This document shows, piece by piece, positions 29,970-37,430 of a stretch of DNA of 64,000 bases. Location: NCBI GenBank assembly GCA_028826165.1, contig JAPDFW010000063.1:744001-808000 (forward strand). The letters run 5' to 3'. The DNA comes from Anaeramoeba ignava BMAN (lineage: Eukaryota > Protista > Anaeramoebae). Within the stretch, counting starts at the first letter, position 1; every line of letters begins with the position of its first letter. A program made the translations under genes and the position numbers. The notes beneath the pieces were generated by a model that saw nothing but the letters and a program-made list of their open reading frames with translations, did no database searches and had not been told where the DNA came from.

Positions 29970-32900
29970 ATGAGTGATTCAAAAAATTCAAAATCAAAAT
30001 CCAAAACAAATGAAAAAACAGAAAAAAGCAAAAGCAAAAGCAATAATAATAATAATAAAGAAAAAGAAAAACCAAAAGAAAAAGAAAAACCAAAAGAAAA
30101 AGAAAAAGAAAAAAATAATGAAAAAGAAAATTCAAATGAGAAGCCATTAAATGAAGAAGATAAAAGAAGACAAGAACTTATTGAGAAAAGAAAGAAAGAA
30201 GATGAAGAAATGGAAAAACAAGATAAAGATGAAGGTCAACGTTTAATTGATATAGTCAATAAACTTCAAGATGCTTTTACTAAAGTTGGGTTTGTGTTAT
30301 AAAAATTATTTCAAAAAAAATTTAACTCAAAAAAAAATTAATTCAAAAAAAATTTAACTTTTAAAACATATTAGAATGGCAAATTTAGATTTACCTCAAA
30401 TTGCCGTTGTTGGTTGTCAAAGTTCTGGAAAAAGTAGTGTTCTTGAAAGTGTTGTTGGAAGGGATTTTCTTCCAAGGTTTGTTAAATCAATTTTATATCA
30501 ATTTTAAATCAATTTTAAATCAATTTTAAATCAATTTTATATCAATTTTATATCAATTTTAAATCAATTTTAAATCAATTTTATATCAATTTTAAATCAA
30601 TTTTATATCAATTTTAAATCAATTTTAAATCAATTTTAAATCAATTTTAAATCAATTTTATATCAATTTTATATCAATTTTAAATCAATTTTAAATCAAT
30701 TTTATATCAATTTTATATCAATTTTATATCAATTTTATATCAATTTTATATCAATTTTAAATCAATTTTAAATCAATTTTAAATCAATTTTAAATCAATT
30801 TTAAATTAATTTTATATTAATTTTAAATCAATTTTAAATCAAATTTAAATCAAATTTAATTAAATTTTAAATCAATTTTAAATCAATTTTAAATCAAATT
30901 TTAAATCAATTTTAAATCAATTTTATATCAATTTTAAATCAATTTTAAATCAATTTTAAATCAATTTTATATCAATTTTAAATCAATTTTAAATCAATTT
31001 TAAATCAATTTTATATTAATTTTATATCAATTTTATATCAATTTTAAATCAATTTTAAATCAATTTTATATCAATTTTAAATCAATTTTAAATCAATTTT
31101 ATATCAATTTTAAATCAATTTTAAATCAATTTTATATCAATTTTATATCAATTTTAAATCAATTTTAAATCAATTTTATATCAATTTTAAATCAATTTTA
31201 AATCAATTTTATATTAATTTTAAATCAATTTTATATTAATTTTAAATCAATTTTAAATCAATTTTATATTAATTTTAAATCAATTTTAAATCAATTTTAT
31301 ATTAATTTTAAATCAATTTTAAATCAAATTTATATCAATTTTAAATCAATTTTAAATCAAATTTAATTAAATTTTTAATCATAAAAGAGGAACAGGGATT
31401 GTGACAAGAAGGCCATTAGTCTTACAATTAATTAGAGATACAAGTCTTCAAGCTGGTAAATACAAAAATATTTTCAAAATAAATTTATTTTCTTATAAAT
31501 TTTTATTTTCTTTAAATTTAGAATATGGAGTATTTTTACATCGACCAAATGATAAGATTTATGATTTTAATGAAATTAGAGATGAAATTATTCGAGATAC
31601 TGAAAGAATTACAGGAAGAAATAAAGGACTTTCTCCTTTACCAATAAATCTCAAATTATTTTCACCAAATGTTGTTAATTTAACATTAATTGATTTACCT
31701 GGAGTAACAAAAATTGCAGTTGGTAAATCAAAACTATTATTATTTATTATTTATTTAATTATTTATTTATTATTTAATTATTTTATTATTTTTATTATTT
31801 TAATTATTTTATTATTTTTAGGTGATCAACCTGAAGATATTGAAAAACAAATTAATGATATGGTTTTAAATTATATTAAAAGACCAAATTGTATTATTTT
31901 AGCTGTTACACCAGCAAATACAGATTTAGCTAATTCAGATTCATTAAAACTTGCAAAAACTGTTGATCCAAAACGTAAAATTCAAAATAAAAATCAAAAT
32001 TAAAATCAAAATCAAAATCAAAATCAAAATCAAAATCAAAATCAAAATCAAAATCAAAATGGATATCAAAATCAAAATCAAAATCAAAATCAAAATTAAA
32101 ATCAAAATCAAAATCAAAATCAAAATCAAAATCAAAATCAAAATCAAAATCAAAATCAAAATCAAAAATAAAAAAATCAAAACCAAAATAAATTAAAATC
32201 AAAATCAAAATAAAAATCAAAATAAAAATCAAAATCAAATTCAAATTCAAAATAAAAATTAAAATTAAAATAAAAATTAAAATTAAAATCAAAATCAAAA
32301 TCAAAATCAAAATAAATCAAAATCAAAATCAAAATCAAAATCAAAATCACAAAATCAAAATCAAAATCAAAATAATCAAAATTCAAAATCAAAATCAAAA
32401 TCAAAATCAAAATCAAAATCAAAATAATCAAAATTAAAATTAAAATCAAAATCAAAATCAAAATCAAAATCAAAATCAAAATCAAAATTAAAATAAATAA
32501 AAATCAAAATCAAAATCAAAATAAAAATCAAAATAAAAATCAAATTCAAAAGGTGAAAGAACTATTGCAGTTTTAACAAAACTTGATTTAATGGATGAAG
32601 GAACAGATGCATCTGAAATTTTAGAAGGAAGAGTTATTGATATGAAATTTATAGGAGTTGTTAACAGAAGTCAAAAAGATATTGAAGAACACAAAAATAT
32701 AGATTCAGCAATTTCTGCTGAAGATGAATTTTTTCAATCACATCCTAAATATCATTATATGGCAGATTATATGGGAACACGTTATCTTGCAAAAATTTTG
32801 AATAATGTATTTTAATTTATAATAAAATATTTTAATTGAAAATAAATATTTTAATTGAAAATAAATATTTTAATTGAAATTATAATTTAGAAATTAATTC

Positions 32901-35156
32901 AACATATTCAAAAATGTCTTCCTGCAATTTGGAAAAATGTTGATAAAGAAAAAGAAAAAGTTCAAGAAGAACTTGAAAAACTTGGAGTTGATGATCAAGA
33001 TTTACATCGAAAACAAGTAATTTTCAATTTAAAATTAAAATTAAAATTAAAATTCATTTATAAAAATAATTAAAATTAAAATTAAAATTAAATTTAAAAT
33101 TAAAATTAAAATTCATTTATAAAAATAATTAAAATTAAAATTAAAATTAAAATTAAAATTAAAATTAAAATTAAAATTCATTTATAAAAATAATTAAAAT
33201 TAAAATTAAAATTAAATTTAAAATTAAAATTAAGATTGCATTTTCTGCTCTTTCAAAATTTGCTGAAGATTTTAATAATTATATTGATGGAAGTTCTGAA
33301 TTTGATACAATTAAAAATGAAAAATTTAGAGAGAGATTAATTGGAGGAGCAAGAATTAAATTTCATTTTACAAATAGTTTTGTAAAAGATATTGAAGAAT
33401 TAAGAATTGATGATGATTTAACTGATGAGAGTAAAATAATATTTATTCTTAAAATATTTATTTAAAATATTATTTATAAAATATTAATTCTTATAATATT
33501 TATTTAAAATATTTATTTAAAATAATATTTATTTAAAAAATATTTATTTATAATATTTATTTAAAATAATATTTATTTAAAATATTTATTTAAAATATTT
33601 ATTTATAATAATATTTATTTATAAGATTAATTTATAAAAATTATTTATTTTACAAAATTTTTAAAATATTTGAAAAAATTATTTATTTAAAATATTTATT
33701 TATAATATTTATTTATAATATTTATTTATAATATTTATTTATAATATTTATTTAAAAATATTTATTCTTAATATTTATTTAAAAAATAATATTTATAATA
33801 TTTATTTAAAATATTTATTCTTAATATTTATTTATAATATTTATTTAAAATATTTAAAATATTTATTTAAAATAATATTTATTTATAATATTTATTCTTA
33901 ATATTTATTTATAAAATATTTATTTATAAAATATTTATTTATAAAATATTTATTTAAAATAATATTTAAAATATTTATTTGAAATATTTATTTAAAATAA
34001 TATTTATAATATTTATTTAAAAAAAAAAGCAATCGAAAGATATATAAGTAACGCAGAAGGAGCAATATCAAGATTAGGAATTCCAGAAAAAGCATTTCAT
34101 TGGGCAATACGATTTGGATTAAACAAACTTGAAGCACCATGCGTACGATGTGCGGAAAATGTGGAGAGAGAACTAACAAACATATTAGTTCGTTCAGCAA
34201 ACAAAGTGAAAGAATTCACGAGTTTTCCAATGTTAAAAGAAAGAATATTACAAACATCAATAGCATTAGTAAAAAGATTACGAAAACCAACACACAAGCT
34301 GATCAAAGACTTAGTAAAAATGGAGCTAGCTTATATCAACTTCGATCATCCAGCACTTCATGTGAAAATGTTTACTGGAGATAAAACAGGAGAGATTGTT
34401 GAAGGTTGGATAACAAAAAGAGGAGGGAAATCAAAGAAATGGCAACAAAGATGGTTTGTATTAAAAGCAAGAACACTGTTTTATTATGCATCGCCAAAGG
34501 ATACAACAGCACTTGGAGTTGTGCCATTAGCAGGTTGTATTGTGGAAACAATGGAGGATATTAAAAAAGAAGATCCAAAATCACAAACAAATACTAGTAA
34601 TAAAACTGCGCCTTTGAATCAGAGTCAAAATCAAGATGAAAAAAAAGATACAAAAACAGAGCCCAAAAAATCCGTCTCGAAAAAAGAAAAGGATGCGCTC
34701 CCAAGAGGCGGACAGTTCTATTTCAGAGTTAGTCATCCAAGTTCAAGACAAGTTGTTCATGGAAGACCGGAAATCGAACTTTTTACTGAAGACATGAAAT
34801 CGTTTCAAAATTGGGTCAGTGCGCTCAAAAGAGCTTCACAAGGATCAATGAGAGATAAACAAGGCCAAAACAGGAATGCTTGGCTTATTAGAGAAGTCGT
34901 TGTTTCTTATTTCAAGGCTGTTAGAATGAATCTTTTCGATAAAATCCCTAAAGCTATTTCTTTAACAATGATTAATCCTATAAAGAAAAATCTTGAAGCT
35001 GAATTAATGACTAGAATTTATAGTGAGGAATTACTTGATGATATTATGAGTGAAGATCCGGGAATTAAAGAAAATAGACAAAGATTGAAAAGAACTTTAT
35101 TTCTTCTTAAGGAGGCAAGTGGGATTATGCAAAACTTAAAGAACATGAAATTTTAA
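29970..35156 (+). CDS. Dynamin-family GTPase with GTPase, middle, PH and GED domains and no proline-rich tail; 9 exons
   Basis: [32 protein letters not shown]|[27 protein letters not shown] and [13 protein letters not shown] is followed by the PH domain ([23 protein letters not shown]) and the GED (SYF...FDKIPKAI). All junctions splice in frame with GT-AG. Confidence 0.94.
30483..31375. repeat. 11-mer satellite (ATCAATTTTAW)n in dynamin intron 2
   Basis: Direct inspection of the sequence. Confidence 0.88.
31980..32548. repeat. (AAAATC)n hexamer satellite in a dynamin intron
   Basis: Direct inspection of the sequence. Confidence 0.88.
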
Positions 35157-35735
35157 ATTTATGAATTGATTTTTAAATTGATTTTTAAATTGATTTATGA
35201 ATTGATTTATGAATTGAATTATGAATTGAATTATGAATTGAATTATGAATTGATTTATGAATCGATTTATGAATTGATTTATGAATTAATTTATGAATTG
35301 ATTTATGAATTGAATTATGAATTGATTTATGAATTAATTTTTGAATTGAATTATGAATTGAATTATGAATTGATTTATGAATTGATTTTTGAATTGATTT
35401 TTAAATTGATTTATGAATTGATTTATGAATTAATTTATGAATTGATTTATGAATTGATTTATGAATTGATTTATGAATTGATTTATGAATTGATTTATGA
35501 ATTGATTTATGAATTGATTTATGAATTGATTTATGAATTGATTTATGAATTAATTTTTAAATTGATTTATGAATTGATTTTTAAATTGATTTTTAAATTG
35601 ATTTTTAAATTGATTTATAAATTGATTTTTGAATTGATTTTTGAATTGATTTATGAATTGATTTATAAATTGATTTTTAAATTGAATTATGAATTGATTT
35701 ATGAATTGATTTATGAATTGATTTATGAATTAATT
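35157..35735. repeat. 12-mer satellite (ATGAATTGATTT)n starting directly at the dynamin stop codon
   Basis: Direct inspection; this repeat produces the spurious YELI ORF. Confidence 0.88.
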
Positions 35736-35863
35736 TTAAAAAAAACACGTTTCAAATTTTTTCTTTCATCAACTTTTTTCACTTTTTTAATTTTCATTTA
35801 AATTTTTAATAAAAAAAAATTTTTTCATTTTTTATTTTTCCATTTTTTTAAATCAAAATCAAA

Positions 35864-37430
35864 ATGAAAAACTCCCAAATAATTTTAAATAAAAAAACAT
35901 TTTGGTGGAAAGCAATACAAATTTTTATAATAGCAGGAGTAGATTTTTTTGCAGAAACATTAACAACACCAATGGTAGCACATATGGTTAAAAAAAAATT
36001 CCATGTGAAATCATCAATGGTTGGAACAGCATCAGGAGCAATAGTTGGAGCATATACTTTTTCACAATTTCTATCCACATTTTATTTGGGTCATTTAAGT
36101 GATAATTTTGGTCGAAAAATTGTTATGACAATAAGTCTTACTGCAAGCATGATTGGTATGGTTTTGTTTGGGTTTGCTTGGTCGCTTGCTGCTTCTATTA
36201 TCATCAAACTTTGTGATGGATTACTTAATGCAACTTCTCCAATGTCAAAAGCAATTATGAGTGATTTAACTATGTTTTCTTTAAATAAATATCGCACTGT
36301 TTTTTTTGGATTTCTTGAGTTTTCTTTGATTTTTGCAAGAAGTATTGGTGCTTTAACTACTAGTTTTGCTTTTGATGAATCTGCTGGTATTTCTTGGCTC
36401 AAAAATTATCCTTATATGCTTCCTTGTTTATTTGGTGCTTTGTTTGAATTTATCACTTTGATTTTTATGATAATAGTTTATAGAGATTTACCAAAACCTG
36501 AAGAAATTAAGAAAGCAACTGAAAATACGTCTTTATTAGAAAAATCCAAAAATGAAAAATGAAAATGAAAATCAAAATGATGAAAATTTAAAATCAAATG
36601 ATGAAAATGAAAATCAAAAATCAAATGATGAAAATGAAATTGAAAATGAAAATGAAAATGAAAATGGAATTGAAAATCAAAAATTAAATATGGAATTTTT
36701 AAATGATGAAAATCAAAACCTTTTTTTCCCAAAACGTAAAAGAAAACTCTCTTTAGTTCCTGGCCTAAAAGCAATTTGGAAAAGTTCTGTTCTTAAAGTT
36801 GTTATATTCATGTGTGGTCTTACACATTTTGGAAATAGTTCTACAAATGTTGCTTGGGTTCTTTTTTCTTCAATGAAAAAATCAGAAAACGGACTTGATT
36901 TTTCACCAAAAGAAATTGGATTCATTTATGTTGTTCTTGGATTAGAATCATTAATTTTCTTATTCTTCATTTACAAACCATTAACAAGAAAAATTGGAAT
37001 CAAAAAAACATTTCTTTTTGGAAGTCTTAGTTTAGTAGTTGGAAATCTTGTGTTTCCTTTATCATCTTTCATTTACAAATGGTTTGGAGATGAAGCTCAA
37101 AAAAGTCCATACACTTGGATTTTAATATCCCTTATTATGATCCCAAGTACTTGTGGCTTTGTAACAATGTTGCCTAATTTATTCACAATGGCTGGTAATA
37201 TTTCTGCTTATGATCGCCAAGGATTAGTTATGGGAACTTTGGACTCAATTTCTTCTTTGGCTCAAGGATTAGGCCCTATTTTTGGTGGTGCTGTTTTTTC
37301 TCTTGCTGTTGTTATCGGCTTTACTTATCTTTATTTTATTATTGTTGCCTTACTTTATCTTCTTTGTTTTATTGCAATTTATCGAGTTAAAGAAGTTGAC
37401 TATCAAAAACCCAATTTAGGAATTAATTGA
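35864..37430 (+). CDS. MFS transporter (DHA1/TetA/ZIFL-like) split by a +1 frame break at about 36555
   Basis: Motif A GHLSDNFGRK in the N-terminal half. The second 6-TM bundle (RQGLVMG..SLAQGLGPIFGG) is in the next frame, and the break lies in an AAAATG-repeat-encoded loop. Confidence 0.85.

Follow-up and report, generated by a model that had tools for sequence, protein, structure and literature searches.

According to PMC4824007, dynamin homologues are limited to holozoans, and the dynamin-related proteins (DRPs) of other eukaryotes lack both the PH domain and the proline-rich tail (PRD) of these proteins; in PMC11789081 a PH domain is reported only for animal Dyn and plant DRP2. The stretch of DNA analyzed here, in the following "the window", comprises 64,000 nucleotides of the metamonad Anaeramoeba ignava BMAN (contig JAPDFW010000063.1, positions 744,001 to 808,000), and carries a gene for a dynamin featuring a PH domain between the middle (stalk) domain and the GTPase effector domain (GED). 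The gene had been pointed out in a reading of the sequence alone (the sequence-only reading), which stated, in agreement with both papers, that PH-dynamins are usually described for animals/holozoans and for plant DRP2. A literature search found no published description of the metamonad PH-dynamins: the Anaeramoeba genome paper does not discuss dynamins, listing the PANTHER family in its supplement only (PMC11550330), and the word 'dynamin' is absent from the paper on new free-living metamonads (PMC11316075). The proteins themselves are already present in public databases, under generic names. As described below, the gene is no isolated oddity, being a member of a conserved PH-dynamin clade found across several free-living metamonad lineages. 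Taken as a whole, the data are best explained by a PRD-free PH-dynamin, with a fission mechanism of the classical type and a possible shared ancient origin, an explanation which is considered rather probable.

The gene spans positions 29970-35156 of the window, on the + strand, and is composed of 9 exons, whose lengths total 2547 nt (848 codons plus the stop). Exon borders were set by reading the sequence and then checked by splice sites, phases and alignment to the paralogue P0151: all 8 introns are of the GT-AG type (8/8), the phases close, and the nine exons align, in order, over residues 1-102, 104-136, 138-158, 161-226, 228-277, 279-362, 363-404, 405-468 and 471-847. Pfam searches were run exon by exon. 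The features of the gene are the following:

29970-35156, + strand: whole PH-dynamin gene, exons 29970-30289, 30375-30476, 31388-31455, 31522-31722, 31822-31974, 32553-32806, 32891-33016, 33235-33430 and 34030-35156 (splice sites, P0151 alignment, collinear Pfam matches)
29970-30289, + strand: exon 1, N-terminal extension, low-complexity and Lys/Glu-rich, of about 85 aa before the first conserved dynamin helix
30375-31974, + strand: GTPase domain, exons 2-5 (Dynamin_N profile positions 1-25, 59-115 and 116-157, in exons 2, 4 and 5)
32553-34355, + strand: middle (stalk) domain, exons 6-8 and first 108 codons of exon 9 (Dynamin_M profile positions 1-69, 71-106, 117-170 and 172-277)
34398-34838, + strand: PH domain, aa 123-269 of the last-exon frame (PF00169, E 7.2e-16, 59.1 bits vs a cut-off of 25.1)
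34416-34454, + strand: basic beta1-loop-beta2 stretch, the presumed inositol-phosphate pocket (gap-free alignment to GRP1, KLGGRVKTWKRRW)
34575-34688, + strand: disordered beta5-beta6 loop of the PH domain, 38 aa, rich in Lys/Glu/Gln/Asn (predicted local distance difference test, pLDDT, <50 at model residues 64-101)
34875-35135, + strand: GED (PF02212, E 1.4e-21)

The sequence belongs to the dynamin family: GTPase motifs, Dynamin_M and GED are all present. The GTPase motifs, as read in the sequence, are intact, with the P-loop GCQSSGKS, the switch-I segment GIVTRRP, DLPG and, at the start of exon 6, TKLD. Exon 1 gave no Pfam match. The last exon provides a frame of 374 aa without internal stops (34032-35153, + strand), which is matched in succession by Dynamin_M (aa 1-108, E 3e-20), PH (aa 123-269) and GED (aa 282-368). 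As the stop codon (35154-35156) lies only 6 codons beyond the GED match, there is no proline-rich tail.

The structure of the PH domain was modeled by AlphaFold2, from an alignment of ten PH-dynamin family members. The model features seven strands (model residues 4-12, 19-27, 30-34, 44-47, 52-55, 112-116 and 129-133) and a C-terminal helix (137-152), with a core pLDDT >90. Its top match by Foldseek is the GRP1/cytohesin-3 PH domain with Ins(1,3,4,5)P4 (E 3e-8); GRP1 is best also by VIA-align (Z 16.2, root-mean-square deviation 2.0 A over 105 residues), and is followed among the structural matches by PLEKHA7, PEPP1, ARNO, DAPP1 and AKT. Human dynamin PH (1DYN) ranks 45, with a Z of 13.3. With the single PH sequence as query, GRP1 scored an E of 1.4e-10, and dynamin PH was not among the best 60 of the 76 matches (E up to 1); when PDB was searched with the family profile, ARHGAP25 and GRP1 came first (58 bits, E 1e-14), with dynamin-2 PH at 28.5 bits (rank ~37) and dynamin-1 PH at 22 bits (rank ~51). 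A hidden Markov model (HMM) of 56 animal dynamin PH domains gives metamonad PH domains <=11.5 bits, or no score at all; the metamonad PH HMM, in turn, gives animal dynamin PH <=20 bits and many unrelated PH proteins 40-64 bits. A protein-atlas feature search provided weak leads only (0.77). Model and profile comparisons together indicate that the A. ignava domain is a genuine, canonical PH fold of the GRP1-like type, and not of the dynamin subtype.

Much of what the sequence-only reading had claimed about this segment is confirmed. It had placed a PH domain between middle domain and GED at 34390-34840, and the PF00169 match falls within these limits; the protein motifs which it quoted, ALKRAS included, are all found in the last-exon frame, and the proline-rich tail, which it described as missing, is indeed missing. 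The check by structure or HMM which it proposed also turned out positive, the segment being modeled as a confident PH fold. Its definition of the PH as "classical-dynamin-like", in contrast, is contradicted by the HMM scores and by the ranks reported above, and the parallel drawn between the C-terminal end of the domain and that of animal dynamin is not specific for dynamin, GRP1-type domains ranking first both in sequence and in structure. The claimed agreement with the Kxn(K/R)xR phosphoinositide-binding consensus holds in part: K129 in beta1 (numbered in the last-exon frame) and R140 in beta2 are conserved, while the middle basic position is occupied by Gln.

In PH domains, the key residues of the pocket are Lys and Arg. 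Both K129 and R140 are invariant in six family proteins and nearly so in ten, and an aromatic beta3 residue (Tyr) is conserved across the family. At position 2 before the beta2 Arg, Gln is found in this protein (WQQRW), and Gln or Glu in most family members, so that the consensus is only partly matched. Because the domain is a canonical GRP1-like PH with conserved beta1 Lys, beta2 Arg and beta3 Tyr, it would most likely bind a phosphoinositide headgroup directly. Two observations speak against this prediction: the strict consensus fails at its middle position, and the beta2 Arg is replaced by Met in the A. flamelloides proteins P0155/P0156 (KWGQMWF). The lipid specificity cannot be read from the sequence, since the middle residue of the motif is Gln and the Arg of GRP1 is aligned here to a Leu. 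The insertion between beta5 and beta6 is found in every metamonad member, at the same position, with variable length and sequence. In P0155/P0156 this loop reaches ~80 aa, and the N-terminal extension is composed for 30-37% of Lys+Arg.

The last exon was compared by HMMER to 1.84 billion cluster representatives: 11 proteins were found at E <=1e-30, of which few match through the whole query, coming from Anaeramoeba, Barthelona sp. PCE, Eukaryota sp. GEM-RC1 and a metagenome. Further relatives came from a profile search: two A. flamelloides proteins, and others from Eukaryota sp. TZLM1-RC and the trimastigid Trimastix marina. The metamonad orthologues share the same conserved PH blocks, the beta5-beta6 insertion and a disordered N-terminal extension. 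The latter, present in all full-length metamonad PH-dynamins, is ~105-175 aa long, and is polybasic in Anaeramoeba, Ser/Thr/Pro-rich in Barthelona, GEM-RC1 and TZLM1-RC. Neither a PRD, nor a C-terminal tail, nor a PxxP cluster is found in metamonad PH-dynamins, the N-terminal extension included. No protein from Trichomonas, Giardia or Monocercomonoides was detected among the PH-dynamin matches, which does not prove its absence. In the Trimastix marina protein (P0154, EukProt EP00771_P001598), residues 5-194, upstream of the GTPase domain, contain RA_2 and FERM_M; this arrangement may reflect a genuine fusion, or else a chimera in the transcriptome assembly.

A. ignava itself features several such genes. 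A Dynamin_M scan of the genome identified 9 dynamin genes, 5 of them intron-rich PH-dynamins and 4 PH-less; a six-frame genome search found 4 further loci with the stalk-PH-GED order, on contigs C2, C67, C145 and C65. The closest database proteins are the NCBI entries named 'dynamin [Anaeramoeba ignava]', and four paralogues are annotated. For one paralogue, P0002, a EukProt transcript carries M-PH-GED on one mRNA: the evidence for expression concerns this paralogue, not the gene in the window. As to the PH-less genes, located at C64:1057688-1058956(-), C58:430382-431227(-), C58:433263-434114(-) and C126:597737-598582(-) (loci L010, L021, L022), Dynamin_M lies in single long open reading frames (ORFs) in all 4, two are in tandem on C58, and one is annotated as 'dynamin related protein 1 isoform a'. 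Their tree branches reach 1.0-1.2 changes per site, while the intron-rich PH-dynamins are slow-evolving.

The survey of protist dynamins, also proposed by the sequence-only reading, showed that PH-dynamins are not confined to metamonads. They are found in the stramenopiles Cantina marsupialis, Tetraparma gracilis and Triparma columacea (the latter two Parmales), and in five further sequences, P0189 (environmental), P0101, P0325, P0047 and P0052. P0095 was counted as PH-bearing by the in-house HMM only (24 bits), with no Pfam PH call, while P0162 is a truncated model, in which the presence of a PH is not readable. P0047 comes from Logan (SRR9661224, 11 kb contig) and P0052 from an ENA metagenome scaffold (locus L023:8001-9857). 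Both have a GRP1-like PH, reaching <=11 bits with the holozoan dynamin-PH HMM, and no PRD.

Trees were built from the dynamin core, after removal of the PH/insert-B columns, with the gene in the window represented by its last exon only; plant DRP1/DRP2 are not among the rows, nor are Parabasalia, Fornicata sensu stricto, alveolates and many further groups. Under LG+C20, a careful tree of 47 rows unites the metamonad PH-dynamins in one clade (100/100), whose grouping with holozoan Dyn, fungal Vps1, the Cantina type and Bodo is weakly supported. Another careful LG+C20 tree, of 45 rows and with three PH-dynamins added, places 21/21 PH-bearing sequences on one side of a branch (ultrafast bootstrap, UFBoot, 82 / SH-like approximate likelihood-ratio test, SH-aLRT, 88; 78% of bootstrap trees). 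Within it, three subclades are well defined: metamonad (100/100), stramenopile-like (98/96) and holozoan Dyn with P0047/P0052 as their strongly supported sisters (99/97). A quick site-heterogeneous tree of 88 rows groups 25/25 PH-bearing sequences in one clade (SH-aLRT 97), which includes none of the PH-less unnamed dynamins (0/34), PH presence being a single change across the 88 sequences; two of those 25, P0095 and P0101, had been flagged as PH-bearing by the domain scan before tree building. The PH group is recovered by the G domain alone, with the exception of one fragmentary row (SH-aLRT 80), and weakly by Middle+GED alone (66). When holozoan Dyn and fungal Vps1 are forced together, the log-likelihood changes by -10.5, with a borderline p of 0.049 in the approximately unbiased (AU) test; a clade of metamonad and holozoan sequences is not rejected (AU p 0.476).

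The PH-dynamins of metamonads, holozoans and stramenopiles may derive from one ancient PH-bearing paralogue, a proposal for which the odds are about even. In its complete form, to which an equal chance is given, the paralogue would be older than the split between Metamonada, stramenopiles and Holozoa, dating back to about the last eukaryotic common ancestor; from it, holozoans would have derived animal dynamin by remodeling the PH and adding the PRD, whereas the GRP1-like PH would survive in the metamonad and stramenopile orthologues, the gene having disappeared from most other lineages. The PH would thus have strongly diverged later in holozoans, and losses would have occurred in many lineages.

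A number of observations weigh against a single origin. The patchy distribution would need many losses. A quick tree under LG+G4 leaves the PH-bearing group unresolved as one clade, the clade found with 88 rows comes from a quick tree and not from a careful search, and the trees include no plant DRP1/DRP2, Parabasalia, Fornicata sensu stricto or alveolates. A signature search found no residue common to the three PH-bearing subclades and missing from PH-less dynamins. The metamonad PH shows no specific similarity to either holozoan dynamin PH or Cantina-type PH, and the tree of PH domains alone, whose background of 26 A. ignava PH domains is biased toward canonical PH, has no power, joining metamonad and holozoan PH at only 80/55. 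The dissimilarity of the PH domains is, however, weak evidence against common descent, because P0047 and P0052 are sisters of holozoan Dyn and yet feature a GRP1-like PH.

The domain may instead have been acquired by convergence, which is judged a serious possibility, with a chance somewhat short of even. A generic GRP1-like PH would have been inserted independently at the insert-B site of a DRP in an early metamonad, in parallel to what happened in holozoans, plants and stramenopiles; the grouping in core trees would in this case stem from similar constraints acting on stalk and GED, or from the attraction between fast-evolving, specialized paralogues. Reciprocal HMM scores and PDB ranks, by which the PH sequences of the different classes are not specifically related, fit with this proposal, as do the lack of signature columns in common, the missing PH clade under LG+G4 and the support of only 82/88 in the careful tree. 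From the literature, a passage of PMC6759080 cites work inferring that several lineages recruited endocytic DRPs independently, and holozoan and plant PH-dynamins are treated as separate in PMC11789081. Convergence is less easily reconciled with the trees obtained under the better-fitting site-heterogeneous model, where the PH clade is recovered from the complete data set and from each of the two partitions: one of these, the G domain, is far from the insertion. PH presence, moreover, maps as one change over 88 sequences, the PH clade does not attract the longest branches (those of Bodo and of the PH-less A. ignava DRPs), and in P0047/P0052 the PH is diverged past HMM recognition within a well-supported dynamin clade. 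The alternative posed by the sequence-only reading, a PH-dynamin older than assumed or an independent insertion, was the right question, and the odds between single origin and convergence are roughly even; of the separate trees which it suggested, that of the GTPase domain recovers the PH group, and that of the PH domain lacks signal.

Whatever its origin, the protein would act in a way similar to classical dynamin: stalk and GED would build helices on the membrane neck, constriction would be driven by the GTPase domains, and binding to the membrane would be provided by the PH at the tip of the stalk. Recruitment would not involve PRD/SH3 partners, acidic phosphoinositides being bound directly, and the polybasic N-terminal extension may contribute electrostatic affinity for the membrane. 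The most likely cellular job, in free-living phagotrophs, would be scission at the plasma membrane or in the phagocytic/endosomal pathway.

A different job, division of the mitochondrion-related organelle (MRO), i.e. the hydrogenosome, in place of endocytosis or phagocytosis, is the main competing functional proposal, and appears improbable. Its main attraction lies in trimastigids, where two class-A DRP forms are described, the second without a counterpart in the amitochondriate Monocercomonoides exilis, and a role of this form in MRO fission was speculated, in an account that does not mention a PH domain (PMC6759080). As no M. exilis protein is found among the PH-dynamin matches, the PH-dynamin may be that second form. 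However, Trichomonas and Giardia, both MRO-bearing, yielded no PH-dynamin in the searches, and among metamonads PH-dynamins were found only in free-living phagotrophs. Furthermore, Drp1/Dnm1, which divide organelles, rely on insert B and on adaptor proteins rather than on a canonical PH of the phosphoinositide type, and A. ignava has four PH-less DRPs as well.

The G+C content of the window is ~20%. Tandem repeats, a different one in each case, take up nearly all of introns 2, 5, 7 and 8 and of the 3' flank of the gene, at 30482-31381, 31978-32551, 33029-33243, 33438-34022 and 35157-35736, with units corresponding, respectively, to an 11-mer (x82), a 6-mer (x97), a 59/65-mer (x3.5), a 13-mer (x43) and a 12-mer (x48). 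The protein encoded by two overlapping long ORFs downstream, at 35864-37430 (+ strand), is hydrophobic and multi-span, and contains an Asn/Glu-rich insert.

A public protein model of exactly this gene was not found among the full-length database matches (469-1491 aa): public annotation may lack the gene, or have it broken up by its repeat-filled introns. Although this lack of a model and the position amid long tandem-repeat introns might suggest a chimeric model, an assembly error or a pseudogene, such an explanation is extremely unlikely: the domain layout is not a product of the gene model or of splicing, because stalk end, PH and GED lie in a single unbroken exon, no stop interrupts the full frame and the splice sites are canonical, the GTPase motifs are all intact, the same layout is found in 4 paralogues and in orthologues of other metamonad lineages, and a paralogue transcript shows the identical order of domains.

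The metamonad and stramenopile PH-dynamins run counter to the view that such proteins arose only in the relatives of animals and in plants. If they are ancient, the PH-dynamin design is much older, and the fission machinery of early eukaryotes has to be reconstructed differently; if they are convergent, a PH has arisen at the stalk tip no fewer than three or four times, which would be a clear example of convergent protein engineering. With either origin, a natural dynamin with a canonical PH and no PRD becomes available, for asking how far dynamin function needs SH3 partners. Five paralogues, in an organism with a membrane system as elaborate as that of Anaeramoeba, make the family a candidate player in phagocytosis or symbiosome biology.

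Compared to known systems, the A. ignava protein shares with classical dynamin (holozoan Dyn1-3) the order GTPase-stalk-PH-GED, with the PH between Dynamin_M and GED; its exon pieces align to fish dynamin-1 over the whole core, and the two are grouped on site-heterogeneous core trees. It differs in having no C-terminal PRD, in its disordered N-terminal extension of about 85-105 aa, and in the PH itself, which is GRP1-like, contains a disordered 38-aa beta5-beta6 loop and is not recognized by the dynamin-PH HMM. Plant DRP2 (ADL6/ADL3 type) is another case, outside animals, of a PH between middle domain and GED (PMC11789081, PMC4154393); according to the literature DRP2 has a PRD, and the likeness is by description, not by sequence. 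The GTPase-stalk-GED core is common also to Vps1, Dnm1-Drp1 and Dictyostelium DymA, fungal Vps1 being one of the PH-less groups closest to it in the trees, but these proteins feature an unstructured insert B where the A. ignava protein has a folded PH. The other PH-dynamins (Cantina, Tetraparma/Triparma, P0189, P0101, P0047, P0052) share the Dynamin_N-M-PH-GED order, the lack of a PRD and the same core-tree clade, while their PH sequences differ and include neither the long beta5-beta6 loop nor, at the N-terminus of the protein, the long extension. For the PH domain alone, the best matches in sequence and structure are with the 3-phosphoinositide-binding class (GRP1/cytohesin, ARHGAP25, PLEKHA4-7), to which the beta1-beta2 signature aligns without gaps; the protein context is wholly different, the middle residue of the A. 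ignava motif is Gln, and the Arg of GRP1 faces a Leu.

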